Below, piece by piece: positions 3,181 through 58,654 of a stretch of 64,000 bases of DNA (position 1 is the first letter of the stretch; each line of letters starts with the position of its first letter). The stretch is from contig NIVC01002933.1 of assembly GCA_002269645.1 (NCBI GenBank), positions 65,575 through 129,574 on the forward strand. Reading direction: 5' to 3'. The notes beneath the pieces were generated by a model, which saw nothing but the letters and a program-made list of their open reading frames with translations, had not been told where the DNA came from and did no database searches. A program made the translations under genes and the position numbers. Source of the DNA: Macrostomum lignano. Taxonomy: Eukaryota.

Positions 3181-3350
3181 AGACGGAACCTACTCTTGAA
3201 GCTATCCTCGGCTGAAGGTGGCAAGTTTCACGGATGCAGCAACTGCCACTGGGCGGTCTGACGACTCGGACTCACGAACTGGCTGCATGTTGAACAAAAT
3301 GCTGTTGTAACTGAAATTTGACTCACCTCCACTACATTCCCAGTTCCGAA

Positions 3351-3504
3351 AAGCTAACACAGTGTACTTGCTAAGCTAACACAGTGTACTTGCTAAGCTA
3401 ACTCAGTGTACATGCTAAGCTAACTCAGTGTACATGCTAAGCTAACTCAGTGTACATGCTAAGCTAACTCAGTGTACATGCTAAGCTAACTCAGTGTACA
3501 TGCT
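3351..3504. repeat. 22-bp tandem repeat GCTAAGCTAAC(A/T)CAGTGTAC(A/T)T
   Basis: About 7 units read directly. The same unit occurs at 7333-7465. Confidence 0.9.
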
Positions 3505-6013: not shown

Positions 6014-7844
6014 TTACAAGCTTGAACCAACTCGCAACTTCAGGCAGAAAACGTTGCCCCGAGCATCTCCGACAAGCAGATGCAGCTGAGCATCGAATGA
6101 CAGCAGCTTCATCGTAGTAACTTCGCAGCTGTGCTTGAAGTGCGACACCTGCAAAAATTGCAGGGTTCGAAATATTCTGATAATAAAAAACACAATGCGA
6201 TAAAAGCTCATGAGGGAGATTTTAAGCCGCACCTCAGCGAGCTGGTTCAGTGCAGCTCCGGCCTGCATGCGCCAGACGCTGACTTCCCCACCGAGGCCGT
6301 GGCGAGGAACGGCAGGACGCCGCTCAGATCGTCCGTCAGCCGGCAGAGGGCTGTGATTGGCTGCGCGTGGCACTGCGATGGTCGGTGAGAACGGTGCGAT
6401 GAGATATTTCTTCTGAGGTCAGATTTTCAAGACGTTGAAATTCTCTGCAGCTGTTCAAAAGGCTTACCAGAAATCTGCTGACCACTGGGCAGAGCTGCAT
6501 GCTGGAGTCCATTCTGAGCACCGAGATCCGCCCGGGTATCCCACAAGGGAATATCAGGCAGGCTTCTCCGGGCAAGTCGCCGGCAGCGAATACCTGCAGC
6601 AAGGCCGCAGCTCCGTCCAGCAAGTCGAGTCGGTCAGAAGCTCGCCAGCCTCCAACAATGGCAGGACCCGCCAACGCGGTGCGCAGCGTCGCCAAGTAAA
6701 GCCTGGGGTTGCCGAGCTGCAAGCAGAGCATGTAGTCCGGCTCCACGATCCGCAGAAGCACCGGCGGCCCAGCCGTCGCATCCAGGTCGCCGGCACCACT
6801 TTGGTGCCGAAGGGCGACGAAACTGCCCTGAGCTGCCACCAAAGCCAAAGTGGAATCTTCAAAGCCTACGACTGCCGCATGATTCTCAGGGATGGGGCAG
6901 AGGGCTGTCACGGGCGAGTGGCTGTCCAGCAGCTCTGCGACTCCAGCATTCAGCATGTCACGCAGAAGCGACTCATGGCCTTGAAGTAGGAGCTGCCCAC
7001 AGCGGATTCTGACCAGGCCTCTCCGCTGCTGCCAGCTGAGCAACAGAAGACTACCCGTCGGCGAGTTCAGATGGGTCACGGCGCCCCAAAGCGATGGCGC
7101 CAGCATTCGATGCTGCAGACACATGGAGTCCAGGTGCCACAGCAGCACGGACCCGTCCGCGCCGCCAGTGGCAACAAAAGAAATGTTTCCAAGACGGCAG
7201 ACTGCGGCGACTCGACTGCTGTGACCTCGGCTGAAGCCCAGCTCAGCGGGTGGCAAGTTTGAAGGATGCAGCAACTGCACTGGGCGGTCAGACGACTCGG
7301 GGTCGCGAACGGGCTGCAAGTTGAAGGCGAAAAAGCTAACACAGTGTACTTGCTAAGCTAACACACTGCACTTGCTAAGCTAACAAACTACACTTGCTAA
7401 GCTAACACAGTGTACTTGCTAAGCTAACACAATGTACTGGCTAAGCTACGAACACAGTGTACTTGCAAGTCTTACAACATGCACTTGTTCGGCTCCACCA
7501 CAAGGAAGACGAAAATGTTGCGTCGCAATCGACCCGCCGGTTGCAATAAAATTCGCTGAAGGCGCTGCTGGATCCTGGACAGGCTCCTGCGGCGAATCAG
7601 TCAGCCTTTCGTCAAACAAAATTCTGCTGCTGTCCGTGGCGGAGTCACGCGCTGGTCGGCTCCCAGAGTTGCCTGAGAATCCGTGAAGTTGAATAGTTTG
7701 CTACTTTTCAGAAAATTGAAGCCAGAAACACACATGACATAAATTTGTATTTAAAAATGTTTCACTTACCAATAGCTCGCTGCAGCCGTTGAGAAGAGGC
7801 AATTTGGCGCTGAGGTGCGATCGAAGCGCCACGAGGTCTCTCGG
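6014..7844 (-). pseudogene. WD40-repeat gene A (5'-truncated, fused to TRAF copy 2, frameshifted)
   Basis: Exons about 7844-7770, 7700-7476, 7335-6468, 6372-6230 and a last exon ending at 6014. WD-type motifs GHSSRVAAV...VATGGADGSVLLW and CHAQPITAL...LATAS...VSVW; C-terminus LLVGDARGNVFCLKL. Exon structure is paralogous to gene B. Frameshift near 6290 relative to B. Confidence 0.75.
7333..7465. repeat. 22-bp intronic tandem repeat (same unit as 3351-3504)
   Basis: GCTAAGCTAACACAGTGTACTT units inside a WD40-A intron. Confidence 0.85.
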
Positions 7845-8502
7845 GACACTCCGACAGGTGAGCAACATATCCCCGCCTGTCCATCGGTGTGCTCCGCTCC
7901 GAGCAGTGAGGACAGCGAGCTGAGAATCTCGGACAGCACACATCGGACTGCAGATTCCTGTGACTGGTCTCCATCTCGCTGTGTGTGACCAGCTGAGAGC
8001 ACAGGTCGCAGGTCTCCTTCCTGTGGCGACACTCGCTGCTGGTGTGTCGCTGCATGTCCTTCTTCAGGATGAGCTCTTTGCACTGCTCACAGCGGAGTGA
8101 GTGCCAGTCGCAGCTATGTTGCACATGCTGGTCCATGCGAGCCCATTCGAGTTGGACAGAGCAGCCGGCGTCGCAGTTCGGACAGCGGACTCGCAGCTTG
8201 GCGACCTCGCGTCTCGTCGCCATGTCGGGAAAGCAGGTAGCCCGGCTCACCTCGACCTCGACCTCGCCGCTAGCGTCCTCCTCCGAGTGGTGATCTCTGA
8301 GTGTGCAGGCCTCGGTGTGTCCGGGACAGGGCCGCTTCTCCACCTCGTGCAGCAGGCCGGTGACGCAGGCCTGGCACAGGCGGCACCCGTGCAGAGTCTG
8401 TTGGGCGTTGAAGAGCGGCTTTGAGCAGCTGCTGCACTGCAGGTGAGCCGGCAGATCGGAGACCGGCCGTGCGGCCGTCACACTCGAAGGCAGCTCGGAC
8501 AT
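7845..8502 (-). pseudogene. TRAF-like copy 2, truncated after ...SECPERP and joined to a WD40-A exon
   Basis: ATG at 8502 (MSELP). Similarity to the other copies stops at GAGAGACC (about 7845), after which an unrelated exon ending in a GTAAGT donor follows. Confidence 0.85.
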
Positions 8503-10214
8503 GGCGGTTGAAGCAGGGAACTGTTTTCAAACGTTTTTAATTGTCAGTCTTAAGTATGTTGCCTTCACTTTACTAGGGTTACTGCTAATGCCACAGGGTT
8601 CTACCTACACTCTTCAGTACTGTCTACTGTACTGCAGCTCTTTCCTCTGGATAAGGTTGTTCATATCGCGTGCGTTGCTTCCTTGTTAAAGGCTGCCTGT
8701 GATTCTGTTTATAGGCGTTTTCATTTTAGATGAAGTTTTCCTTTTTTACAAAACGTCTAAAATTAAATGTACTGCGGTGTCGTGAGTACACTATTAGCTA
8801 CAGTGATGGAAATGTAAATTTCCTTCGCTTTCTTCACTTTGAACAGATAGAAAAACACATTTATACGAGCGTATATCTGCTTAAAACATGATCAGGTACA
8901 ACCTATGACATTTCACGGACTACTTAAGTAGACGATATAAACGACAATTAAGTAGTCTGTGAATATGATTCGGTAAATAGCACTCTTTAACATTGGCATC
9001 AAATCAAAAGATTGACAAAACTTAAAACATTTTTATGGCTCGCAATTCAGGCCACCCATTCGCAATTGAGGTGACATGTTTTCGTCAGGAAGAGGTCGCC
9101 GGCGCCCCGACTGGACAAAAAGCGGATCCCGCTACCGGCCACAGTGCCAAAATGTCCAACTGGGTCAATGGACTCTAGTAGCTATGATATTAAAACGAAA
9201 AGCCATCGTATTCATTGAATTCATACATCATCAACATATAGCCCCTAAATAGTCGCGAACGAGAATGGCTGTTAACCAAACGAAAACAGAAAAATCACTT
9301 GAAGCAGAGAAAGATATTTAATTTTTAATATATTCATTGTCTCCTCTCGGCTTTCCCAGATAGATATTTTAGTACATTGGCTATGAATTATTGGAAAAGA
9401 ACACTTCAACGCTGCTATCATGATCAAATTTCTTCAACTTTAACTCAGTGTGCAAAATTATACTCAACTCACAGTAGTGGTGTGTACTCGTAGGCACAAT
9501 TAGAAGCCACCGATGTGCTTGGGAACCAGATTTTTAAGCCGTTGATATTTTAAGCGGCTTTCCACGGATAATCCTTAATATCTCATCGCAAGCGGCAAGT
9601 CCAAGTGAAGCCCATAGCAATTCCGTGGATTCTCCAGCAGTGAAGAACGCATTCAATACTCGTACGAGGCTATTCTACGGCTTTTCCGGCTAAATCAGAA
9701 TGGTAATGTTTCAAAGAAAAGAACTTCAAAGAAAACGTGAGTACAGTGCATGCGCACACAGTTGCCGCCCAGTTAAAAGGCGAAATGCAGACTCTACTTA
9801 GCTCGCAGTAGAGTGAAACATGGTGTACGCCACAAAGTGTTTTTGTATTGCACATTGCAACTAAGTACAGTCAACACTGCACGTTTAAAAGGGAACTTGT
9901 TTTTTGCGCTTGGCATTGTACGCAAAGTTAGTACACTAAGTTTTTCGCAACCAAGCGATGGAGTTTTGCTGCTTTATAAACGCGTATAGGTTTCTCAGCA
10001 TTGTGTCAACAAAAAATTAAGCAACACCTCAAAAGAGGCCCAGAACTTCTAAAGAAATCCCGCAAGAATTGCTGGCTAGTTTTATGAAATGATTGATGTG
10101 ATCTGATTTGGATAATTGCATTACTGATATCAGAATAACTATATGATTACTAAACCCTGTATCTGTTAAACTGCAAGTAATGAGGTGCAGAGTAAGTATT
10201 TGTACGATGTCTTC

Positions 10215-14990: not shown

Positions 14991-15704
14991 CTTAATAAAA
15001 TGAATTGAAATGAGGCTTGCACCGCAAAAGTGCCGAACACATCACTGCGTTCTCTTTAAGCAGTCTTTCATAGCACGTTTGTGTATAATTATAATGTTTT
15101 GTATATTTTGTATTTTGTAATACGAGCTATTTTGTATTTTGTCCAAGCCCATCCCACTCCTTGGTTCGGTAGCTCCCCCTCTCTCTGTTAACTTTTTGTA
15201 AGCGAGCTGCGCTTCCAGACTTTGCCTAAGCCAGGTTTTGAATTAACCATGTTTTGCTGGGCGTCTGCAAATTTGCGTTTCTGCTGTGGTGGAACGGCTG
15301 TTCGTGTTATCCGAAACGTCAACAGACTTTTTAACCGAGTCCTGCTCAGCACAGCTCAACTCATTCCTCGTCAACTTTCCTCTACGCTTGTACCGACCTG
15401 CCTGTGGTTTGTGTCGCTTGCAACGCTTGGCTGGGATTCTCTCCGTTGCATTGCGTATTTTTCGGGATCTGCTTCAGCCTGCAGTCTTGCTATAAAAAAA
15501 GCTGCTTTCAATTCAAAAAGTTCGGCAAGCGGAACTTCCCATTCTGCTCGACACGCGGCTTCTACAGTTTGGAATGGGGAAGTCAACAGATCGGCGTTGG
15601 GATCAGAATGCCTGCTGAGTTAAAAAAAGCAGCTGCAGTTGCGAAATCATATCTGATTTACGACAGGATGACGGTTTAGCTTGATGTCAAAATACTCCTT
15701 GCAT

Positions 15705-17217
15705 AGCAGAGAGACAGCAGAGAGACGGCAGAGAGACAGCAGAGAGACAGCAGAGAGAAAGCAGAGAGACGGCAGAGAGACAGCAGAGAGACAGCAGAGA
15801 GACAGCAGAGAGACAACAGAGAGACATCAGAGAGACAGCAGAGAGACAGCAGAGAGACAGCAGAGAGACAGCAGAGAGACAGCAGAGAGACAGCAGAGAG
15901 ACAACAGAGAGACAACAGAGAGACAGCAGACACAGCAGAGAGAGAGCAGAGAGACAGCAGACACAGCAGAGAGAGAGCAGAGAGACAGCAGACACAGCAG
16001 AGAGACAGCAGAGTGACAGCAGAGAGACAGCAGAGAGACAGCAGAGAGACAGCAGAGAGACAACAGAGAGAGAGAGCAGAGAGAAAGCAGACACAGCAGA
16101 GAGACAGCAGAGTGACAGCAGAGAGACAGCAGAGAGACAGCAGTGAGACAGCAGAGAGACAACAGAGAGACAGCAGAGAGACAGCAGAGAGACACCAGAG
16201 AGACAGCAGAGAGACAGCAGAGAGACAGCAGAGAGAAACCAGAGAGACAGCAGAGAGACAGCAGAGAGACAACAAAGAGACAGCAGAGAGACAACAGAGA
16301 GAAACCAGAGAGACAGCAGAGAGACAGCAGACACAGCAGAGAGAGAGCAGAGAGACAGCAGAGAGACAACAAAGAGACAACAGAGAGACAGCAGAGAGAC
16401 AGCAGAGAGACACCAGAGAGACAGCAGAGAGACAGCAGAGAGACAGCAGAGAGAAACCAGAGAGACAGCAGAGAGACAGCAGAGAGACAACAAAGAGACA
16501 GCAGAGAGACAACAGAGAGAAACCAGAGAGACAGCAGAGAGACAGCAGACACAGCAGAGAGAGAGCAGAGAGACAGCAGAGAGACAACAAAGAGACAACA
16601 GAGAGACAGCAGAGAGACAGCAGAGAGACACCAGAGAGACAGCAGAGAGACAACAGAGAGACAGCAGAGAGACAGCAGACACAGCAGAGAGACAGCAGAG
16701 TGACAGCAGAGAGACAGCAGAGAGACAGCAGAGAGACAGCAGAGAGACAACAGAGAGAGAGAGCAGAGAGAAAGCAGACACAGCAGAGAGAGAGCAGAGA
16801 GACAGCAGACACAGCAGAGAGACAGCAGAGAGACAGTAGAGAGACAGCAGAGAGACACCAGAGAGACAGCAGAGAGACAGCAGAGAGACAGCACAGAGAC
16901 ACCAGAGACAGCAGAGAGACAGCAGAGAGACAGCAGAGAGACAGTAGAGAGACAGCAGAGAGACACCAGAGAGACAGCAGAGAGACAGCAGAGAGACAGC
17001 ACAGAGACACCAGAGAGACACCAGAGAGACAGCAGAGAGACAGTAGAGAGACAGCAGAGAGACAGCACAGAGACACCAGAGAGACAGCAGAGAGACAGCA
17101 GAGAGACAGCAGAGAGACAACAGAGAGACAGCAGAGAGACAGCAGAGAGACAGCAGAGAGACAGCAGAGAGACAGCAGAGTGACAGCAGAGAGACAGCAG
17201 AGTGACAGCAGAGAGAC
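15705..17217. repeat. Purine-rich about 11-bp minisatellite (GACAGCAGAGA variants)
   Basis: Read directly. It produces the spurious SLLSLCCL and RQQRDSRE ORFs. Confidence 0.95.
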
Positions 17218-17423
17218 GGTGGATCCGCCTATCGAAAAGCCGCCGCCACGCAGCTCAAGCGCAGACGTGGAAGACAGCCAATGAGAAATTGCCAAGCCAT
17301 AAAGATAAACTGCTCACTGTCTCCACGCAACGGAAGATGAACAGCGGAAGAGGAAATTTCCACTGCCTCGCCTAAATGAGCGGCAGCCTGAGATTTGCCG
17401 AGGAATTTCTTCGAGCTCTGAAA

Positions 17424-18956
17424 ATGTTATTCGGAATCATGTCACTTCTCTGTTGCACCGCCCTCGGTAAGTGCAACGCCGAATGTCAATTCTAAGCCCG
17501 TAATAGTCGCAGTTTCAACTCGCATTTCAAACCGATGGCTTGACTGACCTACCTCATGATATGAGAGACTAAAGCTCAATACTTTCGACTCAAACTGAAA
17601 TTTCACAGGCTTGCAGCCAGACATTTCCAGCCGCTTCTTCGCCTTGGACCCCGGACCCGTCCGGATCGGCAACGCCTCCAGCAGCGAACTCGTCAACCTG
17701 ACCGGCGTCAAGTCGCGGCTGCTGTGTCTGGCAGCGTGCCAGCGGAACGGCTGCCTGCTGGCTTCGCTCATCCCCAGCTCGAGCGTCTGCCAGCTGCTGC
17801 TGCTGAACAACGCGTCTCAGGCGCCGGGACCGGCCGGGACTCACGTGCAGAGACTCGTGGGCTCCGAGCCCGGCGCCAGGCTGTGGACGGCCGAGAACTT
17901 CACGGAGCTGATGAGGAAGAGGATGCTGAATGTCACCATTGAGCTGAGAAGTGAGTCACTCCACCTCATGGCTAGATGTCACTGCGATCTAAACACTCAT
18001 GCTGTGCTTTGAGAGTCCAAATGGCGCCCTCTCTCACTGCAGACAGCGGCACGGGCAGGGCCGGCTCCATCCAGTCCGTGACGATCCCCTCGACCGGCTG
18101 CTACCGGATCGAAGTGTCGGGCGCCAGAGGCGGCACCAACTCCTTCTCAGGCAAGGCTGGCGGCAGCGGCGCCTTCGTGTCCGGCGCCTTCAACCTGACA
18201 GCCGGCACCCAGCTGAGCGTCGTGGTCGGACAGGCCGGCGGTCCGCCCAGCTCGAACTACAAGGGAGGCGGTGGAGGCGGCGGCAGCTTCGTGTACAGAA
18301 CGGCAGACGAGCTGCTGCTGGCTGCGGCCGGAGGCGGCGGTGCTGGCACCTACAGCTCAGCTGGTGAGTCATTCTAGCAACTCAAACAGTGACCGAACGT
18401 GAGCATCATCATTGCCGCTTGAGTAGTGCAGAGCAAATTTTGATTTGTTTCAGGCCTGCCGGGCGAAGCCGGCCCGAATGGAACAGATGACACAGCGCCA
18501 AGCACGAGCCCCAAGAGCTACGGAGGCAGCAACGGACAGCCGGGCTTCAACAACCCGAGCGCCATGCCCACCAGCCACAACCACGGCGGCTGCGGCGCCG
18601 GCTGGCTGGGGAAGCCAGTGAACGCCAGGCGGGGGCCGAGCGATGGCGACGGAGGAGGCAGTCGGGCTGAAGGCTGGGTCGGCGGCGACGCCGGCGGCTC
18701 CAACACCGGCGACGGTGGGTTCGGCGGCGGCGGAGGCGGCGGCACGACGAACCCCAACTGGGGCGCTGCCGGGGCCGGCAGCGGCTTCAGCGGAGGCGGG
18801 GCCGGGTTCTACACCAGCCAGTCTGGAGGCGGCGGCGGTTCCTTCTGCTCCGGCAGCGGCTGCAGCGGCACCACGGGCGGCAACGCCGATCAGCACGGCC
18901 TGGTGTTCATCCGGCTGGTCCTGCCGCTGGGCGACTTCTGCGAGCACCTGACGTGA
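17424..18956 (+). CDS. Secreted protein: signal peptide + PAN/apple-like Cys domain + ALK/LTK-type glycine-rich domain, no TM or kinase
   Basis: Four phase-consistent exons 17424-17466, 17609-17950, 18043-18363 and 18454-18956. N-terminus MLFGIMSLLCCTALG; CLAACQRNGC...C; motif GSIQSVTIPSTGCYRIEVSGARGG...GGSGAFVSGAFNL...LSVVVGQAG...GGGGGGSFV...LLAAAGGGGA...GGFGGGGGG...GGGGGSF. Confidence 0.85.
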
Positions 18957-20245: not shown

Positions 20246-22718
20246 TCAAAATGCAGTCTGATGAAATGCGTTCGCAGCAAGCCAAGGAAGCTCCAGAGAG
20301 AAGGCGTTCCCGCCAGCATCCCCGACAAGCAGCAGAGGCCGGTCGGTGGCTGTGAGGTGCAGCCCCAGGGTGGTCACCTCGTGGCCGTGCTCGAAGTGAG
20401 CAACCTGAGTGGCAGGGGCGGGTTAGAAATTGGCGAGAAGTTTGATTAGAAGCGAAACGAAAAATGACTGCACGATGCCTGACCTCAGCCAGCTGATTGA
20501 CCCCGCTCTGCATGCGCCAAACGCTGACTTTCCCTTGAGCAGAGGCCGTGGCCAGGAGCGGCAGGGCGCCCGTGAGGTCGCTCGTCAGCAGGCTGATGGC
20601 TCGTATCGGCCGGGTGTGGCACTGCGGAAAGGGAGACAAATCGCAGGGAGATCGGGGTGAGTTCGGTGTGAGATCAGGGTGAAACCGGGGTGAGATCGGG
20701 GTGAGATCGAGGTGAGATCGGTGTGAGATCGGGATGAAATCGGGGTGAGATCGGGGTGAGATCGTGATGAGATCGGGGTGAGATCGGGGTGAGATCGGGG
20801 TGAGATCGGGGTGAGATCGGGATGAGATCGGGGTGAGATCGGGGTGAGTTCGGTGTGAGATCAGGGTGAAACCGGGGTGAGATCGGGGTGAGATCGAGGT
20901 GAGATCAGTGTGAGATCGGGATGAAATCGGGGTGAGATCGTGATGAAATCGGGATGAGATCGGGGTGAGATCGGGGTGAGATCGGGGTGAGATCGGGGTG
21001 AGATCGGGGTGAGATCGGGGTGAGATCGGGGTGAGATCAGGGTGAGATCGGTGTGAGATCGGGGTGAGATCAAGGTGAAACCGGGGTGAGATCGGGGTGA
21101 GATCGGGGTGAGATCGGGGTGAGATCGGGATGAGATCGGGGTGAGACCGGGGTGAGATCGGGGTGAGATCGGGGTGAGATCGGGGTGAGACCGGGGTGAG
21201 ATCGGGGTGAGACCGGGGTGAGATCGGGGTGAGATCGGGTGAAACCGGGGTGAGATCGGGGTGAAACCGGGGTGAGATCGGGGTGAGATCGAGGTGAGAT
21301 CGGTGTGAGATCGGGATGAAATCGGGGTGAGATCGGGGTGAGATCGTGATGAGATCGGGGTGAGATCGGGGTGAGATCGGTGTGAGATAGGATGAGATCG
21401 AGGTGAGATCGTGGTGAGATCGGGGTGAGATCTGGGTGAGATCGGGGTGAGATCTTGTGGAGGTTCTGGGTGAATTTGGTGAGAAATGGAAAACATCCTC
21501 AGTTTCAGAATTGAACTTCAGCCTGCAGCAACTTGAAACAATAATTTTAGGTTAGAAATTCAGACATCAGATATTAAAAAGAAACGATTCACCATAAAAC
21601 CCGTCAAGACGGGATGAATTTTGGCATCGGAGCCGAGTTTAACGATGGAGATCCGATTGCGACTTTGACACCGAAACGCCACAATGGCAACTCCGGGACC
21701 GCAGCCTGCAGCGCACGCCTGAATCACTGGAGAAGCATCCGCCGCCATCTCGTCGAAGCACTGGAAGGTTCGCCAGCCGCTGACAGCCATCCTGCCGTCC
21801 TGAGCCGTGTGCAGCTGAGCGGAGCGGAGCACAGGGCTACTGAGCTGGCGGGCCAGCAGCCACCCGGGCTCCAGAATCCGCAAAAACATCGGCGGGCCAG
21901 CCAGAGGGTCGAAACCGGTGAGCCCAACCAGCGGCTGAAGACCTCCTTCGGCTGGCACCAGTGCGAGGCTTCTATCGGTGAGAGCGACAATGGCCTGAGC
22001 AGATTCGGGAACTGCGCACATGACCGCCACAGGTGAGTTGCTTTGAAGCAGCTCCGCCTCTCCAGTGCTCAAAAGGTGCTCCAGCTCAGCATCAGTGTCG
22101 CACAGATACCCCTCCGGGCACCGGAGTCGCACGAGTCCATTCAGATTCTCCCAGCCGGCCAACAGAATGTCAGATGCCGGAGACACCAGACAGATGATTG
22201 GACCCCAACTCGCAGGGGCCCGGACTCGACTCTGGAGACGCATTGAGTCGAGGTGCCACAGCACCGCGATTCCGTCCGCGCCTCCCGAAACAAAAATCTG
22301 ATGCCCGTCTAGAGAGCAGGCAGACGTGACTCGGCCAGCATGACCCCGACTGAAAACCAGCTCGGACAGCAGCTGATTAGGCCCGCTCAGTATTCGGACA
22401 GGCGAGTCGGCAGCAATGGGGTTGCAAATTGGCTAAAAATGTGGAATGAGTTTAGTGACAGGACTTTCGACTAAGTGAATAAAGGTGCGAATGAATATAC
22501 GCAAAGTCGCTCACATTCTGCAACTGCAGAGCTCCACCCAACGAATACGGCCTGTGAAGGAACGATGAAGAGCTCATCGGCGATTCTAGCGGATCTTGGC
22601 CGGGGTCTCGGGGCACCGAGGTCAGTTGTGCGTCGTGTCGGCTTCGGTCGCCAACAGGAACGTCCATGGCCTGCCGTCGGCCACTGAAAACAGCTGACCA
22701 GTGATGAAGAGCAAACTG
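20246..22718 (-). CDS. WD40-repeat module B, four open phase-0 exons, no start exon other than TRAF copy 4
   Basis: Exons 22718-22515, 22432-21593, 20621-20484 and 20404-20246 all have AG/GT ends and join without stops. Motifs GHAGRVTSA...FVSGGADGIAVLW, CHTRPIRAI...LATASAQGKVSVW and LLVGDAGGNAFSL. Confidence 0.82.
20648..21455. repeat. 11-bp intronic minisatellite GAGATCGGGGT
   Basis: Read directly. It lies in the intron between WD40-B exons 2 and 3. Confidence 0.95.
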
Positions 22719-22793
22719 CTAGCATGCTGAGTAGCAGTACATAAAATTTGTCTCAATAATAGAATCCATTGACCCTACACCATACTGACATAC

Positions 22794-23604
22794 CAGAATT
22801 CGAATGAGCTATCGCTGCTTTGAGTTTCGAGTCCATGAGCTCAAGGTGAGAGTCCATGCTTTCCCTGTAGTGCCTCTCCAGATCGGACCTGCGCACCATC
22901 GCCCTGCAGCCCAGGTGAGAGTACTTGCACTCTACCGGTCTCTCGGGACACTCCGACAGGTGAGCAACATATCCCCGCCTGTCCATCGGTGTGCTCCGCT
23001 CCGAGCAGTGAGGACAGCGAGCTGAGAATCTCGGACAGCACACATCGGACTGCAGATTCCTGTGACTGGTCTCCATCTCGCTGTGTGTGACCAGCTGAGA
23101 GCACAGGTCGCAGGTCTCCTTCCTGTGGCGACACTCGCTGCTGGTGTGTCGCTGCATGTCCTTCTTCAGGATGAGCTCTTTGCACTGCTCACAGCGGAGT
23201 GAGTGCCAGTCGCAGCTCTGTTGCACATGCTGGTCCATGCGAGCCCATTCGAGTTGGACAGAGCAGCCGGCGTCGCAGTTCGGACAGCGGACTCGCAGCT
23301 TGGCGACCTCGCGTCTCGTCGCCATGTCGGGAAAGCAGGTAGCCCAGCTCACCTCGACCTCGCCGCCGCCGCCGCCGTCCTCCTCCGAGTGGTGGTCTCT
23401 GAGTGTGCAGGCCTCGGTGTGTCCGGGACAGGGCCGCTTCTCCACCTCGTGCAGCAGGCCGGTGACGCAGGCCTGGCACAGGCGGCACCCATGCGGAGTC
23501 TGTCGGGCGTTGAAGAGCGGCTTGGAGCAGCTGCTGCACTGCAGGTGAGCCGACAGATCGGAGACCGGCCGGGCGGCCGACACAGTCGAGGGCAGCTCGG
23601 ACAT
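22794..23604 (-). CDS. TRAF-like copy 4 first exon (RING + zinc fingers), directly upstream of WD40 module B
   Basis: ATG at 23604. Open to the phase-1 donor CTG|GTATGT at 22794/22793. No coiled-coil exon follows. Confidence 0.88.
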
Positions 23605-24810: not shown

Positions 24811-25151
24811 ACCATTCACTTTTTATTTGACACCGTCTTGGCTTCAGCTTCTTGCTTGGCTTCCTACAGATCCATTTATTCAAACAGCAGTTTGATCTTG
24901 AATAATGGAAATACGAGCGTATATTTTAGACGATTTTACATTTTTGTCTACTTCCCACTGGTCCTCCCCACCTCCGCGCCATCCTCCGCCGCACGCCATG
25001 TGGTTTTTAACCTCTCTTCTTTTCAGCCTTGGCCTTGGTGCTGCGTTCCATTGTTTGGAATTTTATCTGAATGTTTACAACTTATTGAAAAATTTTCCTT
25101 TAGAAACTGGAGTCGGCTCGGGTGCCTGAACTTGAAGGCAGAGAATTTGAC

Positions 25152-25604
25152 GAGCTACAGAGGGGGCGCCAGCTACAGAGGGGGCGCCAGCTACAGAGGG
25201 GGCGCCAGCTACAGAGGGGGCGCCAGCTACAGAGGGGGCGCCAGCTACAGAGGGGGCGCCAGCTACAGAGGGGGCGCCAGCTACAGAGGGGGCGCCAGCT
25301 ACAGAGGGGGCGCCAGCTACAGAGGGGGCGCCAGCTACAGAGGGGGCGCCAGCTACAGAGGGGGCGCCAGCTACAGAGGGGGCGCCAGCTACAGAGGGGG
25401 CGCCAGCTACAGAGGGGGCGCCAGCTACAGAGGAGGGCGCCAGCTACAGAGGGGGCGCCAGCTACAGAGGGGGCGCCAGCTACAGAGGGGGCGCCAGCTA
25501 CAGAGGGGGCGCCAGCTACAGAGGGGGCGCCAGCTACAGAGTGGGCGCCAGCTACAGAGGGGGCGCCAGCTACAGAGGGGGCGCCAGCTACAGAGGGGGC
25601 GCCA
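25152..25604. repeat. 18-bp tandem repeat CCAGCTACAGAGGGGGCG
   Basis: About 25 near-perfect units. Confidence 0.95.
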
Positions 25605-27149
25605 GTTCATAAGGGTGTCTCCGCAGACTGAGATGTCGCTGACCTGTTGTCAGCACTGCTGAGAGTGAGAGCTGCTGCACCTGCCTAGGGACGTACGACT
25701 CTGATGATAGTAGTATTCATATCATTTTAGCGGTGTTTGCTATTTGGTCAAAATAGTCATTGACCATTTTGATGACTAATGCTTGTACATATGTTTGCCC
25801 AAAATGACATATGTTCTATTTTTAGACAATTCACAAAAGCAAAGTACGAGCGTAATATAATAATTCACATAGTTTTCTTTTCATTTCTTTCACGTGGTCT
25901 TTTTTCTCTCTGCACCCATTATTTAAGCCAAGTGTTGCTCTTACGTTTGACATTGAAAAACTCGCTTGCTGTTTAAAAGAATCCTGCGGCTGTTTGGGTT
26001 GGCAGAAGATCGACTCTTTTAAATTTCAACATTCATAGTTTTATAATCAATCGTAGTTTAGAAACAAAGCAGTTTGTGATTAAAGTCACAATAATCTTAA
26101 TCAGGTAACTGACTAGAATTAGGCTATAAATTTTATCTATCAATTGCTCGCGAGTCTCATGTACGACGTACTCGCTTCATTTTTGAGTAAAGAAATACAC
26201 TGCAGTTTGGGAAGTTCCTTCAGTGAAACGGTGAAACTTGATTTCTTTGCCTAAATGAGCTTGGTTGGCTTTTTAATTTTTTCGATGCCAATAGTTTTAT
26301 TATTCAATGTCTTTATTTTATATACTTTTTTATCTTTTATGCCGCGAAACTGCGGACTTTTGTGTCTTGGATTTAACTAGGTTAATTGGAACAGAAACGA
26401 CACTTTGTTAAAGTATTTAGAATTTTTATTAAGCAATTTATAATAGTTGTTGTCAGCTGCCAGAACAGCAGAGGTCACAGCAGCCTTTCGGCCCTTTCGG
26501 CTCTCTTTTAGGCTTCTAAAATCCTGACTCACTGACAGGTATCAACTTTGTTGCCATATCAATAGGAAATCATCTTCACCTGCCTCCAGGAGAAGTTCAT
26601 AAAGATTTTGCAGTAGCTCTTGAGGATCTCCGCTTCTTCTTAGTCGATTTATTGTGCCATCTTGCGATACCCGACGGTTGAGCAGCTGCGTCCAGCTTCT
26701 CAGCATAAGCCTTCATCTCACAGTTTTAATTAGTTGTAGCTAGCCCCGATTTTGCAACTTCGAAACTGTTAGATAGAGATTATTAAATTCCCACAAGACG
26801 CTGCAATATTTCGTATTCAGCACAAAAACGATAGTGTGACAAATTTTTAACTCCTTAAAAATCAATTACGTTTTTTGTTGGATGAAGTCTGGTGAAAACG
26901 GCAAAAATTTTATGAATATTTGATATAATGGCATGACACTAGTAACAGGCCAAGTTTACCTACACGAATTTCTAAAAAAAATTGTGCCAAAACGAGTCAT
27001 GAGCAAGCTTTCGTGTTTCATGGACTCGGCACGCAGCTAAAAAGGAGCATTGCAGCGTTTGATGACAAAAAACAGAGCCACACCCTTTCACAAAAACGCC
27101 TAAAGTTTTTAAAAGAAGACTTCTCACTTTTCAGCAGAACACATGCGTC

Positions 27150-30540: not shown

Positions 30541-31539
30541 GAACCCTAAACCTAGCCCAAACCCTGCCGAGAGTGATAGAATTTCAGCAACAGCCGCCAG
30601 GAAATGGAGATCGGAAAATTTCTGATCGAACGGGGCAAGTTTTATGAAATTTTGTTGAGCCGTTTTTCTCTGAAATCAATCACATACCTACCTATATACC
30701 CAGATAGATAGAGAAAACTCATTTTAGTATACCGGTTATGTTAAGGCTAATCACATTTATATGTAGACTTTAAACCTTTTTTATCATCCATTAAAAGTGT
30801 GGCCCAGTGAATGTTTACGCTCGTATTGCATTATCTTCTGCTTAAGTAGTCCTTGCTATTAATACTATTTTATTTTATGATTACTCATTACTGTTCCCCA
30901 CTCTCATCTTAAAAAAGCGATTTGTCGGCCAGCTACTCAGACGAGCCGCTCATTCTAAATTTTTATTTAGAATGAGCAGCTTCATGCCTTCAGGCCTCGC
31001 CTGAAATGAGGCCTTCAGGCCTCGCCCAGAACTGAAAAAAACACAGCTCACTTGTCCTGTTTATCTGGCACACGAAGCTTCACTCGTGGCGGGGTTCTGA
31101 GATTCTAAAAATAGAACTTGCGTTTCCAGACAGGCAATTTGACTGAAATGAATTGAATGTACACTGCATGTGTGGGACTGACAAGTACATGTATACTGGG
31201 TACGTGTTGGAGTGTACATTTGGAACAGGACGTATCTTATTTCCCTACCCACACGTACAATATAAGCTAGACTTATAATAAGCAAGATATTTGTGATGTT
31301 CAAATTAATGGAATTTTCCACAACTAGCAGACATTTCCGTCACGTGAATTTTAGTCATAAAAAGCATGATTGCTCTTTATTAATTCTGTCAGTATAGAAA
31401 AGAGCTGAAAAAAGCCGAGACTGGCTCGCATTGTTCACTAACAAGTGAACCTAAAGTAAATGCGACATCAGCCAAGTGAATTCCTGCGACAGCTTATCAC
31501 AAAAGCAGGGTTTTATCCAGCGGCACCTCCAACTCATTG

Positions 31540-32295
31540 ATGGTCAGAAGCTTCCAGAACACCCAGCAGTCCTGGTGGGTCCCAGTCGGTCGCATCTCCA
31601 GCCAGGCTGAGGCCCTGTCCCAGGCTCAGCTGTTTGAGGCCCGTCATCCGGGACTAAAGTACACTGGCAGCTGGAACTCCGCCCCGAACTCAAAGCTCTG
31701 CTCCATCGAGGTCGCCTCCGCGGGGTCAATTATTGTCTCTCTGGGCGCCACCTCCAGCCGCAGAGATGCGCAAGACAAGGCTGAAGCCTTCATCGCAAAG
31801 CATCCCTACCTGAAGTGGACAGCCAGCTGCTCAGAGCTCGGCTGGCTCCAGAACTTCCAGATTGTGGTCGAAGCTTTCCTGCCCACCGAGTGGCACATGA
31901 AGGAAGGCACAGTTGGGATCTGCCTACCAGTGACCACCAGCCTGCGGCTGAGGAACCTGACCTCCGAGAAGGTGACCAGGATTACTGCAAGGGGCTTGGA
32001 GCCCAGCGACTGGGGCCAGCGGCGGCCCTGCCTCCAGTTCTCCGACGGGCATATCGCCGAGCGAGGCGTCCTGGAGAAGGAGCTGGACGTGAACTTCTGG
32101 AGCCACACGGCCAAGCTGGCGGTCTGGCTCGGCTTCCAGAGCGGCCGCTACCTGCAGTTCCAGGTGAACAGCCGGCTGGCCATCGACAGCTCGGCGAAAA
32201 ATCATTGGAAATTCTCCTCTGGAGCTGGCCTGTCGGTTTACCACAAGGTGGAACCCGGAGCCCGCCTGCTAGAGGTGGTCGTGTGCGACTCATGA
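31540..32295 (+). CDS. Single-ORF protein, two candidate MVL-like (mannan-binding lectin) repeats + unknown beta-rich domain; paralog of 37244-38011
   Basis: Open ORF with GC3-rich codons, collinear with 37244-38011. Repeats WWVPVGRISSQAEALSQAQLFEARHPGLKYTGSW and IIVSLGATSSRRDAQDKAEAFIAKHPYLKWTAS. The lectin call is motif recall only. Confidence 0.7.
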   Translation: MVRSFQNTQQSWWVPVGRISSQAEALSQAQLFEARHPGLKYTGSWNSAPNSKLCSIEVASAGSIIVSLGATSSRRDAQDKAEAFIAKHPYLKWTASCSELGWLQNFQIVVEAFLPTEWHMKEGTVGICLPVTTSLRLRNLTSEKVTRITARGLEPSDWGQRRPCLQFSDGHIAERGVLEKELDVNFWSHTAKLAVWLGFQSGRYLQFQVNSRLAIDSSAKNHWKFSSGAGLSVYHKVEPGARLLEVVVCDS

Positions 32296-37243: not shown

Positions 37244-38011
37244 ATGGTGCTCACCCTCCCAGTCCCGCCGGCCGTGCGCTGGACGGTACAGCTCGGCCCC
37301 GTAACTGACGCATCAGACGCGAATTCGAAGGCGCTTGCCTACATGGCGGCGAACCCGGGCCTGCGGTGGCTGGGCTCCTGGAAGGCCATCCGGGACGGCA
37401 GGCTGACCGAGATTGAGGTCTCGTCTGAGGGGAGCATCGTGGTGTCCGTTGGAAGCACATCCGACAGTCGGGATGCGAAAAGCAAGACTGAGCTCTTTCT
37501 CAGAAAGAAGCCGTACCTAAAGTGGATCGGAGACTGCACAGCCGCTGGTTGGCACGAGAACTTCGAGATCCTGGTGGAGCCGTACCTGCCCAGCCAGTGG
37601 CCTATGCAGGGGGGCACCGAGGGCTCGTGCCTGCCCGTGCAGATGCAGCTCAAGATAAAGAACGCGACGCCAGAGGCCGTTACTCGAGTTGTCGCGTGGG
37701 TCCTGGATGAAGAAGAGTGGGGCGCCAGGTCGCCGTGCCACCAGCTGACGGGATGCAGAATCGCAGCCGGCCAGAGTCTGCAGAGGCAGCTGGACCTCAA
37801 CTTCTGGCACTGGTTAGCCCAGTTCGGCCTGCGGCTAAAATTCCAGACTGGCCGGTGGCTTGAGTGCGAAGTCAACGGCAGAATTGCCATAGACTGCGCC
37901 GCGGAAAAGAGCTGGAGCTGTAGGTCGGACCGCCCGGGTCTGTCCGCCTGCCCCCTGCCGCATCCGGACTCGCAGCTGCTGGAGCTGCTGGCAGTGCCAG
38001 AGCGCGTCTGA
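37244..38011 (+). CDS. Single-ORF paralog of 31540-32295 (candidate MVL-like repeats + unknown domain)
   Basis: 255-aa ORF. VQLGPVTDASDANSKALAYMAANPGLRWLGSW...EIEV. Shared KPYLKW, FEILVE.YLP..W, G.CLPV, LD.NFW and FQ.GR.L...VN. Confidence 0.72.
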   Translation: MVLTLPVPPAVRWTVQLGPVTDASDANSKALAYMAANPGLRWLGSWKAIRDGRLTEIEVSSEGSIVVSVGSTSDSRDAKSKTELFLRKKPYLKWIGDCTAAGWHENFEILVEPYLPSQWPMQGGTEGSCLPVQMQLKIKNATPEAVTRVVAWVLDEEEWGARSPCHQLTGCRIAAGQSLQRQLDLNFWHWLAQFGLRLKFQTGRWLECEVNGRIAIDCAAEKSWSCRSDRPGLSACPLPHPDSQLLELLAVPERV

Positions 38012-42748: not shown

Positions 42749-44443
42749 TCACGCCACAGTTTTTGACACTTGCGTCACAGTAAGCGGTAGCGAACCTACG
42801 GAGGAGCAAGTCGCCTTCCGCCGAGAGCTTGCCAGCCTGTACAGCAGGTCGACCAGCTCGGCGATGATCGCGATGGACAGCCCGCACCAGATGCCGCAGA
42901 TGCTGCCCACCTGGCACAGGAAGACAGCCGGAGTGGTGATTGGAGTCTGGCGAAAGCTCTGCAGCATGAAGGGGTTTCTGCTTACCTCGGCCATGAAGGC
43001 CCGTGGTCGAGAGACGTTGGAGCAAAGCTTCTCTGCTGAACTCTTCGAGCTGGCGTTGGTCAGCAGGGCGGCTTCGACATCCGAGATCCCGGCGCCCTGG
43101 TAGTTGACCTCGTAGATGGCCTGCTCCATCACGCAGCGCTGGAGATCATTCATGGGGACGTAGCTGGCACCCGAGACCGTGGCCGGGAACCAGAACTCTC
43201 GGCAGGAGCTCTCGCAGTTTTCATCGTAGACCTGAGACGAGCTCAGGACGTCGTCAACGCAGAAGTCCCTTTTGGAGAAAGCTTCAACTGAGTCGTCTGG
43301 TGTGAAAGCGTTGCATCGCATCGTGCGGTCCGTCAGGTTCAACAGGCCGATGTCGAGAGTACAGTTGCATCGCCGATGCACTTCTTTGCGAATCGCCTGC
43401 ACTATGCACATCTCTTTGGTGTACTTAAAGTGCCGGTGCCGCACCGTTCCGTTGTCTACGCGGTACTCTGTCGACCATCCAGACAGGCTGTTGCACTTCA
43501 GCCTTTGCAGCCTACTCTGAGTGAACTTCACCTGGTTGTAGTAGTTGCTTGGCAGTAGCAGTCTGTTGTGGGTAAAGGGCACCTCTAACTCGCTGTGCAG
43601 GTCGAAAACAAAGCCATTGGTGGAAGTGAGACCGTCGATGGGGAATCCAGTTGAAAAATGATTGTCAGTTGACGAGTTGGTGGCGTTTGCTGCGTCCGGA
43701 GCGGTCGGAATCACCAGAACAATTGACTGGGTGAGCTTGGACAATGCGGCTGGCAAAGTCACTGTGTAGCAGCTGAGGTAGTCTGGATGGTGGAATGGCA
43801 CGAGAGTGTAATCGCTGGGCACCAGCCAGATCACTCTTCCTGTCACCTGCAGCATGCGAATGATGGGCGCCCCGATGCTTGCTCTCAGACTGGAGACTTC
43901 GTGCAAGCTTCTATTGGCCCGCGACAGGGTTCCCAGCACAGTGGCTATGTAGTTTCTGAAGCTCTCGATGAGAAGCAGGAAGCCTCTGTCAGCGCTTGGA
44001 TGCCTCAGATAGAACTTCTGCACGCGATCGCGAACGTGGCTAGAAAATTCGGCCGGAGTGAGGACTCGGCCGGCCGACAGGTAACTGAGTGCGCTTTGAC
44101 TCAAGCGCGTCCCGTCGCAGTAGGACACGCTGGGGAATGGCTGGTTCGCGCTGGAAGCGAAGTGCAGATCAACAAGCAGGTCGCCCTTGACAAAGTTCAG
44201 AGTCAGCAACGTCAGGTGGCAGGTCATGCCCGCAAAGCAGGCCAGCACAAAGCAGGTCCAGAACGCGCGCAGCAGGGCGCTGTCTGAATGAACCGTCCGA
44301 CGCAGCGATCGAATGGACGATTCGGCAGCGAACTGGGTCAGGTACGAGGATATCGGTGAGGCGTGCTGCATTGAGGAGCGTTCGGTTGCACTTGCGGAGC
44401 CAAGCCTTTTTCTGTTAGGCAATCTACCCTGTCTTGAATCCAT
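42749..44443 (-). CDS. DEG/ENaC (ASIC/degenerin-like) channel subunit, single ORF
   Basis: 564 aa. TM1 RAFWTCFVLACFAG..., FPSVSYC motif, Cys-rich thumb (C...C.C...C...C...C.ESSC), TM2 FLCQVGSICGIWCGLSIAIIAELVD. Confidence 0.9.
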   Translation of the reverse strand: MDSRQGRLPNRKRLGSASATERSSMQHASPISSYLTQFAAESSIRSLRRTVHSDSALLRAFWTCFVLACFAGMTCHLTLLTLNFVKGDLLVDLHFASSANQPFPSVSYCDGTRLSQSALSYLSAGRVLTPAEFSSHVRDRVQKFYLRHPSADRGFLLLIESFRNYIATVLGTLSRANRSLHEVSSLRASIGAPIIRMLQVTGRVIWLVPSDYTLVPFHHPDYLSCYTVTLPAALSKLTQSIVLVIPTAPDAANATNSSTDNHFSTGFPIDGLTSTNGFVFDLHSELEVPFTHNRLLLPSNYYNQVKFTQSRLQRLKCNSLSGWSTEYRVDNGTVRHRHFKYTKEMCIVQAIRKEVHRRCNCTLDIGLLNLTDRTMRCNAFTPDDSVEAFSKRDFCVDDVLSSSQVYDENCESSCREFWFPATVSGASYVPMNDLQRCVMEQAIYEVNYQGAGISDVEAALLTNASSKSSAEKLCSNVSRPRAFMAEVSRNPFMLQSFRQTPITTPAVFLCQVGSICGIWCGLSIAIIAELVDLLYRLASSRRKATCSSVGSLPLTVTQVSKTVA

Positions 44444-47767: not shown

Positions 47768-47918
47768 CCTGCGCTCAGACACGGCTTGGAGCGCTTTTGG
47801 ACTCTACAGAATCACTGATTTGAGATTTGAGAGTCTTCTTTGCATCTCAAACTTTGCATAAGTACAAGTATATTTGAAAATTCAATAAAGTTATATCCAG
47901 ATTGAAATCTAATTTTAA

Positions 47919-48178
47919 ACATCAGCACACCTCACAGGTACATCAGCACACCTCACAGGTACATCAGCACACCTCACAGGTACATCAGCACACCTCACAG
48001 GTACATCAGCACACCTCACAGGTACATCAGCACACCTCACAGGTACATCAGCACACCTCACAGGTACATCAGCACACCTCACAGGTACATCAGCACACCT
48101 CACAGGTACATCAGCACACCTCACAGGTACATCAGCACACCTCACAGGTACATCAGCACACCTCACAGGTACATCAGC
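47919..48178. repeat. 21-bp tandem repeat ACATCAGCACACCTCACAGGT
   Basis: About 12 perfect units. Confidence 0.95.
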
Positions 48179-48746
48179 AGGAGTCCCAAAGGCCCTTAAA
48201 AGACTCCCAAATCAAAGCCATAACTTGGTTAAAGCACAAAAATGAAACAATATATTTAAAGCATCAAATTTCAAATACATTAATGTTTACGTAAAAAATC
48301 GGTTATATCGAGCATTATTTATTACGGTGTAATCCATGATTTACATATGGATTAAATGTTAAACTCAATCGTATTAAATTGCAAGCTAGTCGTCAAATAA
48401 AAAAATTCAAATTGCCAAAAATTTATCAATTAATGCTGCAAAACACTGAAAAAACTTAATCAGAATAGGCTTCAAATGCCAGCGAAACGCATGGAGAAGG
48501 TAGAAAGTTTTTGACAATACCGGTATTAGGCAAAAATCGCTTTAAGAATGCGCCACAAGTTATCAGAAAGAGAAAACTGAAGCTCGAGACAAATTTTGCA
48601 CCTCCTAACGCTAATGCGCATGCCAGAATAACAAAAATATTAAGTTCTGAAAGATACTTTTATTGAGAATACTTTTTCAGATTTTCTATTCTCTAGCATC
48701 AAGTCTCTTGGCCTCAGTACTTCAAAAGAAGCAGGCTGTCAGTGGC

Positions 48747-55478: not shown

Positions 55479-56486
55479 TCAAGAATGCCATTGCTGAAAG
55501 CAGGTCTCCAGACACAGTCCTGGTTCACCTGGACACGCAGGGCAGCAGTAAATTGATCGTTTGATTCTTTCAGCTCAGTAGCAGACGCGACACCGCTTAG
55601 TTGGCCTTGGCTGACTTTCTCGGGCCGCAATTCGCATTGGGAAATGCGGGCTGACTTGGCCGAAGGCTTGAGCTGCAGCGGCTGCTCGCCTTCTGCTCAT
55701 CCCAGTGCTCTGCACGAATTCACGAATGCTGGCTTCCAGAAACTTAACGAACACCTTTCGGCCGCCGCACTTACAGTATACAATCCAAGCATTTCGGACC
55801 ATCTGCAAGCACAGGTGCAAACCAAGTTTCAAAAACCATTTTCTGGTTTTCCGAGCAGGCTGGTAGGGCTGCATGTGGCCGTCCATTCGATCGACGCCGC
55901 CCATGCAGCGGTTGTAACTCAAAGCTGAGCGGCACTTCTGCACTGCAGCCGCTGCTCCACCTCGGGCGATTCGTCGGACTGGAACTTTTGATGCTGCCTC
56001 CTTTGTGTCCAGCAAATACAACGTTTTTAGACCGCTTTCCTTTCTTTCAACAATCTTTGCGGCCAGTACGGCACCCTTGCGCATGAAGCCGACATCATTG
56101 GGCGGCACATTTAACTGCCTGAGCTCAATCGGCACGCCTCGGTCAGCTCGTATGGTGCAAGTCAGATGAGTATCTCGATCCAGGAGGTACATAGCCAACC
56201 GATAAGAACCAAACCACTTGTCGGCAAAAATGCGGTAGCCTTGGTCCAACAGATCTTGGCAAAGCTCGACAACAATTTTTTCGCTGAATGACAGGTTTCC
56301 GCTTTGTGGATCTAAAGCAAATCTACGATTCTCCTCCGGAGTAGCATGAACTCGAAAGTTGAACAAGTAGCCTGTTTCAGACTCACAAGCACAGTACACC
56401 TTGATGCCATACCTGGCGCGCTTAGTTGGAATGTATTGCTTGAAGCCTAATCGTCCTTTGTAAAGAACCAACGATTCGTCAACACT
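55479..56486 (-). mobile_element. piggyBac (PGBD4-like) transposase, 3' part, interrupted by the Polinton
   Basis: SVDESLVLYKGRLGFKQYIP.K.ARYGIK, FADKWFGS, YNRCMGGVDRMD and RKTRKW. A premature TGA at 55577-55575 splits the Cys-rich tail CRVCY*...YCCPACPGEPGLCLETCFQQWHS*. Similarity stops abruptly at 56486. A possible TTAA end lies at 54526. Confidence 0.88.
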
Positions 56487-57167
56487 AGTAGTATAGAAAA
56501 AGACGCTTCTAGACCCAGAGCACTTTTTTAATGACCGTTTTAAGGGTCTAGAGGGGGGACACGGGGGGTAAATAAAAAAACACATCTAAACACCCTTAAC
56601 ACATCTAATCACCCATAATCACCCCTGACAATAAAAATCATTCCCAACACTTCCAAACACTCCCCAACACTCCCCTCGCGTCCCCCCTCTTAAGACCTTA
56701 CAAACGGTCATTAAAATAAGGTCTGATCTAGAAGCGTCTTTTTATATACTACTACTCTATAACCCCTTGCCCGCGCCGCAGGCGCGAAGGGTCACAAAAG
56801 AGTTTAAACTGAGTCATGGTAATAGTAACACTCAACAAAAAATTACTCTCATAGCCACTATTGGCTAGCTTGCAAAATCTTGCCGTAGCAGGAATTGAAC
56901 GCCCACTCAGCCATCCAACTCTATAAAAACCACAGCCATCAACCCAGTTCTAGCTCATCTCTCAGGAAGAAGAAGACAGGCTCCGCGCGTCACAAGTAAA
57001 ATGGGGTGCCCACCATCAATGAATAAGTTTTTAACAAATCGTCCAGAAAAATTCTGGACGTCCAGAAAAAAATGACTCAATGCAGTATATACACCATCTT
57101 GGGTTGAAAAATATTCTTTTGTGTGTTCTCGTATTCTTTTTTTCTGTTACTAAAAATAGAACAAAAA

Positions 57168-57566
57168 ATGACACACGTTACACATGTGCAAAATATAAAT
57201 GAGTATCAGGTAGGAGATCCAATTGAATACCGAGGTGAGGGACTTTTTGATTTGGTTGGAACAGCAGCAAATTTTGTTAAAGACAATATGGGGCTTATAG
57301 GGCAAGCTGGCTCTGCAGCAGGCTCTATAACAAATGCTGTAAAAGGAGGAATTGAAGCAGCTAGAGCGGCAGAAGAACTAAAGAAATTGAGAGATTTTAA
57401 CGACACCCTCTCACAAATAAATGCAATAAAAGATTTAAAGCTGGCACAAGCCGCACAACCAACAGAAACCCCCACGAAAACCACGCCAATAAGTAATAAA
57501 GATATTCAGGATTTTAATAAAATGTTAAATACTATTAAAGGTGGAAAAGGATTAAAGAAATTTTAA
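57168..57566 (+). CDS. Polinton virion/core-type protein with putative maturation-protease sites (RGEG|LFD, KGGKG|LKK)
   Basis: GxG followed by the amphipathic LFDLVGTAANFVKDNMG. A-rich context before the ATG. Confidence 0.6.
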   Translation: MTHVTHVQNINEYQVGDPIEYRGEGLFDLVGTAANFVKDNMGLIGQAGSAAGSITNAVKGGIEAARAAEELKKLRDFNDTLSQINAIKDLKLAQAAQPTETPTKTTPISNKDIQDFNKMLNTIKGGKGLKKF

Positions 57567-57576
57567 CAATATAAAA

Positions 57577-58571: not shown

Positions 58572-58654
58572 ACTCCTGGGGGGTGGGTCAAGACACCAAA
58601 AACGCAAATTAAAAAATCAATAATTCAAACATTATATAAATTTTATTCTATAAA

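Follow-up and report, generated by a model that had tools for sequence, protein, structure and literature searches.

In this study, we analysed a window of 64,000 nucleotides (nt) from the flatworm Macrostomum lignano (NCBI GenBank assembly GCA_002269645.1, contig NIVC01002933.1, positions 65,575 to 129,574 of the forward strand); all positions below are counted from its first letter. The window has GC-rich exons and short AT-rich GT-AG introns, and it contains nine copies of an exon of ~270 codons, each coding for TRAF-type zinc fingers behind a Cys-rich N-terminus. These nine near-identical copies of exon 1 were compared using self-BLASTN and a nine-copy alignment. Two of the copies stand in front of WD-repeat genes, with the module WD40-A lying behind copy 2 and its paralogue WD40-B behind copy 4. 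Here we describe minus-strand copy 2, whose ATG is at 8502, and its junction with WD40-A. The upstream part of this locus consists of the following features:

8503-8719, minus strand: 5′ flank of TRAF copy 2, with a putative promoter and 5′ untranslated region, 97% common with the head-to-head copy 3
7835-8502, minus strand: TRAF-homologous part of exon 1, starting with the ATG at 8502 and cut in the last zinc finger (self-BLASTN, alignment and Pfam)
7770-7834, minus strand: unique exon tail of 65 nt (from frame reading; no copy in the window)

From 8729/8719 down to exactly 7835, copy 2 is 89-97% identical to the eight other copies of exon 1 in self-BLASTN, and beyond 7835 the similarity is gone at once in both self-BLASTN and the nine-copy alignment. 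For instance, the identity with the head-to-head neighbour, copy 3, is 97.2% over 885 nt (7835-8719 against 12501-11619). In the nine-copy alignment the last matching stretch of copy 2 is ...GAGTGTCCCGAGAGACC, which is followed by complete divergence, and the sequence of copy 2 at the end of the homology is ...CCCGAGAGACC. The last TRAF zinc finger is interrupted midway, after ...SECPERP, and half of it is removed by the break. An earlier note on this DNA had described such a break, with an intra-exon junction from TRAF-type sequence to a WD-repeat gene, and our results bear out both points. They also agree with its statement that copies 2 and 4 differ in breakpoint, for the homology of copy 4 to copies 5 and 9 extends to 22791, just past the exon-1 donor. 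Meanwhile, the open reading frame (ORF) of the TRAF part of copy 2 is intact. Its private changes (3 synonymous and 4 non-synonymous) do not differ from those of the sister copies, and they gave no sign of relaxed selection.

The 65 nt at 7834-7770 are followed by a GTAAGT donor and then by the exons of WD40-A. This tail has no second copy within the window and is open in all three frames. The frame of the TRAF ATG continues from ...CPERP into the tail as RGASIAPQRQIASSQRLQRAI-(G), with a phase-1 end. The +1 reading up to the GTAAGT donor that had been proposed before does exist; it is DLVALRSHLSAKLPLLNGCSELL, ends in phase 0 at the donor, and has a GC content at third codon positions (GC3) of 0.71. 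We also asked whether the tail might derive, by divergence, from the usual end of the TRAF exon. Local and ungapped nucleotide alignments against shuffled sequences gave p = 0.03-0.24 with inconsistent offsets, and protein comparison in the three frames gave p ~0.45-0.6, so that such an origin is not demonstrable.

Downstream of the donor, the WD40-A gene has the following structure:

7673-7769, minus strand: intron 1, GTAAGT...CAG, 97 nt, GC 0.31; with the alternative TAG acceptor (7703-7701), the next exon would begin at 7700
7476-7672, minus strand: WD40-A exon 2, a linker lacking an ATG; in the phase-1 frame it is homologous to exon 2 of WD40-B
7314-7475, minus strand: intron 2, GTAAGA...CAG, 162 nt, holding a tandem repeat of 22 nt x 6 at 7333-7466
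6468-7313, minus strand: WD40-A exon 3, 282 open codons, with one WD repeat FSRGH...GGADGSVLLWHL, 42% identical to WD40-B exon 3
6233-6372, minus strand: WD40-A exon 4, frameshifted at ~6297-6283 and 4 nt shorter than in WD40-B
6014-6148, minus strand: WD40-A exon 5, open, out of frame owing to the exon-4 shift

Exons 2 and 3 together have 347 open codons, which argue for long-term function of this sequence. The 162-nt GT-AG intron (7475-7314) joins the two exons in frame, and the indel that had been suspected near 7332 is not needed. In its own frame WD40-A has no ATG before residue 129, and therefore it needs an upstream coding exon.

The frameshift that had been placed near 6290 is real and truncating. 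Exon 4 of WD40-A is 4 nt shorter than its counterpart, and the pieces that flank the shift each align to WD40-B in different frames. The shift is also present relative to the UniRef entry A0A1I8G632. As a result of this frameshift, the ORF that starts at the TRAF ATG ends at a TGA (6249-6247) within exon 4 and loses its last ~63 residues. Exon 5 and the post-frameshift part of exon 4 (63 amino acids (aa) in all) are 57% identical to the C-terminus of WD40-B. The lesion looks recent, because exon 5 is still open and has kept this identity. In addition, the other ORFs of the window, ~15 kb in all, have no breaks, which makes a chance indel of the assembly in exon 4 unlikely.

When the exon of copy 2 is spliced to the CAG acceptor at 7673 (7770^7672), an uninterrupted ORF of 633 codons runs from 8502 to the TGA at 6249-6247. 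The exon of copy 2, read from the TRAF ATG, has a phase-1 end, which suits the phase-1 CAG acceptor (7673) of the WD frame. Since this path is uninterrupted, the correction of an indel at 7845 called for in the earlier note is not required. The one-base offset between TRAF and WD frames appears under splicing to TAG|7700, and it vanishes through CAG 7673, where the ATG frame is open and phase-matched. Similarly, the phase match between the tail exon and the next WD40-A exon holds through the TAG acceptor at 7701, and on that path only, for the +1 frame (phase 0) fits no other acceptor. From the TRAF ATG, the TAG|7700 path meets a stop at codon 262. In addition, exon 2 of WD40-A is homologous to that of WD40-B in one frame pair only, the phase-1 frame (cross-frame alignment z = 7.0). 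The reading of the junction as frameshifted depends on the splice model, and it is probably not needed.

To place the encoded proteins, we carried out Pfam comparisons, profile comparisons, two word-index protein searches and a full hidden Markov model (HMM) scan of 1.84 billion representative proteins. The gathering score of the Pfam family zf-TRAF (PF02176) is 27 bits. Copy 2 stays under this cut-off with 21.6 bits (E = 3.7e-4) in one stretch, residues 126-178; full-length copy 4 reaches 44.3 bits, and the merged model P0151 reaches 73.1 bits. The N-terminus is Cys/His-rich by eye (CSSCSKPLF...HGCRLCQAC...CPGH), and no Pfam RING family matched it at E <= 0.1. At the same threshold, neither copies 2 and 4 nor their WD40 exons gave a MATH match, and the C-terminal exons at 31537-32295 and 37244-38011 gave none either. 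A coiled-coil exon is absent downstream of copies 2 and 4.

The WD module contains one recognisable WD repeat, with a Pfam score of 25.6 bits, below the cut-off of 27. Profile matches of WD40 proteins in a large library fall mostly at profile positions 29-63, which is essentially that one repeat, and profile matches from the PDB are confined to its N-terminal third, at query positions ~44-148 of the module. Seven canonical WD40 repeats were not detected in the module with Pfam or PDB profiles. In addition, the ORF of exons 4 and 5 has a weak match to the C-terminal propeller of TEP1 (E = 0.012). An AlphaFold2 model of the module is all-beta, with a mean predicted local distance difference test score of 40.7, and is unreliable. 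Among the 1.84 billion representatives, the HMM scan found one true relative of the WD module, A0A1I8G632, which is a partial, WD40-B-like model 92% identical to WD40-B. When the whole copy 4 chimera was used as query, the sole match was a TRAF-only model. Another entry, UniRef A0A1I8GMY3 from M. lignano, is named 'TRAF-type domain-containing protein' and is a gene model stitched from TRAF copies 5 and 6 of the window.

WD40-B, behind copy 4, has the same exon structure as WD40-A, and copy 4 joined to it gives an intact ORF of 708 codons. At this junction (22515-22794, minus strand), the 708 codons are in frame only through the weaker acceptor GGTCAG|22693. The stronger acceptor TTTTCAG|22683, which fits the spliced-leader (SL) acceptor motif of the species, leads to a stop at codon 290. 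Meanwhile, WD40-B has an ATG of its own at 22667 in the context GCCATGG, with a stand-alone ORF of 429 codons. The 'intact' copy 4 chimera is thus a predicted one, in view of the stop behind the stronger acceptor and of the ORF with its own ATG.

The copies of exon 1 are ~96% identical to each other. However, the C-terminal exons of copies 5 and 6 are 43% identical, and WD40-A and WD40-B 42%. From this contrast between exon 1 and the downstream exons, exon 1 is evidently homogenised among old paralogues, with strong concerted evolution restricted to the 5′ exons. The C-terminal exons of copies 5 and 6 (31537-32295 and 37244-38011, plus strand) encode a domain of ~250 aa that has no Pfam match. 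Furthermore, a head-to-head order, WD40 <- TRAF | TRAF ->, occurs twice in the window, and each WD40-linked TRAF copy is closest to its own head-to-head neighbour (97.2% and 96.8%). The earlier note had counted two independent placements of TRAF in front of a WD40 module. Given the homogenised exon 1 and the repeated order, this is not the most economical account, and one old TRAF-WD40 gene that was then duplicated appears at least as likely. A conspicuous match in intron 1 of the two genes, ACAAATTTATGT, was also considered, and it is within chance (p = 0.36 for homology between the introns). Because neither the tail nor intron 1 shows residual homology, the case for a single origin is one of arrangement and parsimony.

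Taken as a whole, the locus is probably a recently disabled or truncated sister of copy 4/WD40-B with its 708 codons, and not a frame-broken fusion. We tentatively favour, with somewhat less than even confidence, the view that the locus belongs to a small TRAF-zinc-finger/WD-repeat pair of genes in a tandem TRAF-like array of M. lignano and has been rearranged. In such a history, one old TRAF-WD40 gene would have been duplicated as a block with a divergent TRAF neighbour, and exon 1 would since have been kept near the array sequence by gene conversion. Position 7835 would then be the edge of the homogenised tract against old or rearranged sequence. If transcription starts from the TRAF promoter, cis-splicing at 7770^7672 would give an in-frame truncated-TRAF-WD-repeat protein, with a predicted product that is without the last one or two blades of the beta-propeller. 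The locus as a whole is best read as ordinary exon shuffling, or gene-family turnover, in a tandem array undergoing concerted evolution, as judged from its sequence.

Several results weigh against this reading. First, the break destroys the zinc-finger domain, and exon 4 is frameshifted. Second, the codon usage of the tail gives log-likelihood ratios of +1.5 for the +1 frame, -4.9 for the ATG frame and -3.1 for the third frame. Third, we estimate that a random fusion would leave an open, phase-compatible path in ~1 in 4 cases. Fourth, no annotated or transcript-derived protein resembling WD40-A, the tail or the TRAF-WD40 chimera was found in sets of 5.8 billion and 1.84 billion sequences. Finally, the tail has no significant similarity to the TRAF tail, and homology between intron 1 of WD40-A and that of WD40-B is not detectable.

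A different history, which we regard as unlikely, is that TRAF exon 1 became joined, through a deletion or rearrangement, to the middle of WD40-A's own first coding exon. The native frame of the tail would then be +1 (DLVALRSHLSAKLPLLNGCSELL, phase 0), spliced to the TAG acceptor at 7701 (QTIQLHGFSGNSGS...). The TRAF part would thus be one base out of register, and the chimera would be dead unless an indel is an error of the assembly. The +1 frame is indeed open with a phase-0 end at the donor, splicing to TAG|7700 keeps it in register with WD40-A, and of the three frames of the tail it has the best codon usage. The abrupt drop from 97% identity to none is also what a non-homologous join would give. 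However, the codon-usage test is unreliable on linker exons, where it picked the true frame in only 21 of 44 windows of WD40-A exon 2 and 18 of 35 windows of WD40-B exon 2. Since its success on these adjacent exons is only ~50%, its verdict on the tail was down-weighted. The 28 nt between the two acceptors (7700-7673), which would become coding under this history, look intronic, with GC 0.39 and a GC3 of 0.22 over nine codons (7700-7674). As an acceptor, TAG after GAAAAG is inferior to TTCTCAG, and in M. lignano the dominant motifs are CAG at cis-acceptors and GT[G/A]AG at donors (PMC8629364). Furthermore, GGTCAG|22693, the in-frame acceptor of the paralogue, has phase 1 rather than phase 0, and its position agrees with that of the WD40-A acceptor to within one codon. 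In addition, the +1 frame upstream of the tail has a single ATG, which is TRAF-derived and stands behind many others.

The locus might instead consist of two units, which we consider quite unlikely. One would be a truncated TRAF relic, with an ORF of 246 codons to a TGA at 7764-7762 if the donor is left unspliced, and the other would be an SL trans-spliced, operon-style WD40-A with an ORF of 399 codons. The spliced leader of M. lignano ends in ...TTGCATG (PMC8629364), and its ATG, when joined to TAG|7700, supplies an in-frame start. Moreover, the ATG of WD40-B (GCCATGG), which opens the 429-codon ORF, stands 17 nt after an acceptor of the SL type [T/C]TNCAG. For an SL trans-spliced downstream gene of an operon in this species, a spacer of ~100 nt would be expected along with this motif. 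Nevertheless, a strong GTAAGT donor lies just upstream of WD40-A, and such donors normally favour cis-splicing (PMC8629364). Neither acceptor of WD40-A fits the SL motif (TCTCAG|7672 and AAGTAG|7700), whereas TTTCAG|22683 of WD40-B does, and the SL ATG joined to CAG|7672 meets a stop after 24 codons. WD40-A also carries CGT at the position of the WD40-B ATG. The residues upstream of this ATG appear to be conserved as coding, for a motif S-G-x-R-x-A-x-D is present in both WD40-A and WD40-B with differing codons.

TRAF7 combines a RING domain, a TRAF-type zinc finger, a coiled coil and seven WD40 repeats. The copy 2 and copy 4 genes share its domain order, with a Cys-rich N-terminus first, TRAF zinc fingers next and then, instead of MATH/TRAF-C, a WD-repeat region. 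They differ from it in having one recognisable WD repeat and in being without the coiled-coil exon. The architecture looks locally assembled in the flatworm TRAF array, not inherited from TRAF7. There may be a stronger version of this view, to which we give only a slim chance: the flatworm would have independently built a TRAF7-like architecture in a TRAF array with a gene-converted first exon, and in copy 2 a rearrangement within the exon would have shifted the native frame of the tail. This shift would be offset by use of the 3′ splice site at 7673, which lies 28 nt beyond that at 7701, so that the chimera stays translatable. If this is true, an out-of-frame fusion of genes would here have been rescued by the choice of splice site.

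It is highly improbable that the junction at 7835, the shift in exon 4 or both are errors of assembly, caused by a nine-copy array with 96% identity in a hidden-polyploid genome. In favour of such errors, the array is rich in repeats, the exon-4 shift adjoins a GGGG run and M. lignano assemblies are known to be difficult (PMC10468722). However, a repeat mis-join would yield a full-length copy rather than a truncated copy against unique sequence, and the nine TRAF exon copies, the 564-codon sodium-channel ORF described below and WD40-B are all without frameshift, indicating a low rate of indel errors.

Returning to the favoured TRAF-zinc-finger/WD-repeat gene pair, we compared it with known gene families and processes. 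A large expansion of TRAF/MATH genes has been reported in the planarian Schmidtea mediterranea (PMC6109357). As in the TRAF families of free-living flatworms, the array in the window is a tandemly expanded, lineage-specific TRAF-type family. However, its C-terminal parts are a 250-aa domain without Pfam match or a WD-like module, and MATH was not detected in the exons examined. The array also resembles cases of exon shuffling and gene conversion in tandem arrays, both in the ~96% identity of exon 1 against 42-43% in other exons and in the junction of copy 4, which lies at the exon-1 donor and joins a phase-1 donor with a phase-1 acceptor. In contrast, the boundary in copy 2 lies within an exon and within the zinc-finger domain, not at an intron.

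If the chimera is expressed, a lineage-specific TRAF-zinc-finger/WD-repeat adaptor would be added to the expanded TRAF repertoire of flatworms, and the locus would be a compact example of concerted evolution together with exon shuffling in a tandem array. Otherwise, it would represent ordinary birth-and-death turnover in a repetitive, hidden-polyploid genome. For annotation, the junction needs no sequence correction, and exon 4 holds the only clear lesion of the ORF.

Some other features of the window were also recorded. One of them is related to WD40-A itself:

3217-3504, minus strand: degenerate, partial second copy of WD40-A sequence, with the repeat of intron 2 and the initial 78 nt of exon 3 (self-BLASTN)

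This duplicate lies ~4 kb downstream of WD40-A, and its repeat consists of 22 nt x 7. Between TRAF copies 7 and 8, an intronless ORF of 564 codons (42749-44443, minus strand) encodes an amiloride-sensitive sodium channel (ASC/ENaC; PF00858, 9e-30). Long minisatellite arrays are present at 15676-17295, 20660-21500, 24838-25662 and 47902-48294; they produce spurious long ORFs on both strands, and one of them occupies intron 3 of WD40-B. Glycine-rich ORFs (GGGGGGSF..., GGFGGGGGGG...) are found downstream of TRAF copy 3 at 17976-18956 on the plus strand.

Near the end of the window, a remnant of a PiggyBac-type transposase (PF13843, 4e-38) lies at 55575-56585 on the minus strand. It is followed by an AT-rich block at 57000-64000, with GC of 0.28-0.32 against 0.45-0.55 in the surrounding sequence, which may be a Polinton/Maverick-like or virus-derived insert. 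This block contains an ORF of 1047 codons (59080-62223, plus strand) with family-B DNA-polymerase-like motifs recognised by eye (YADTDS) and a match to endonuclease VII (Pfam PF02945, 3e-7; PHROG 423), and beside it are several small ORFs with no matches.

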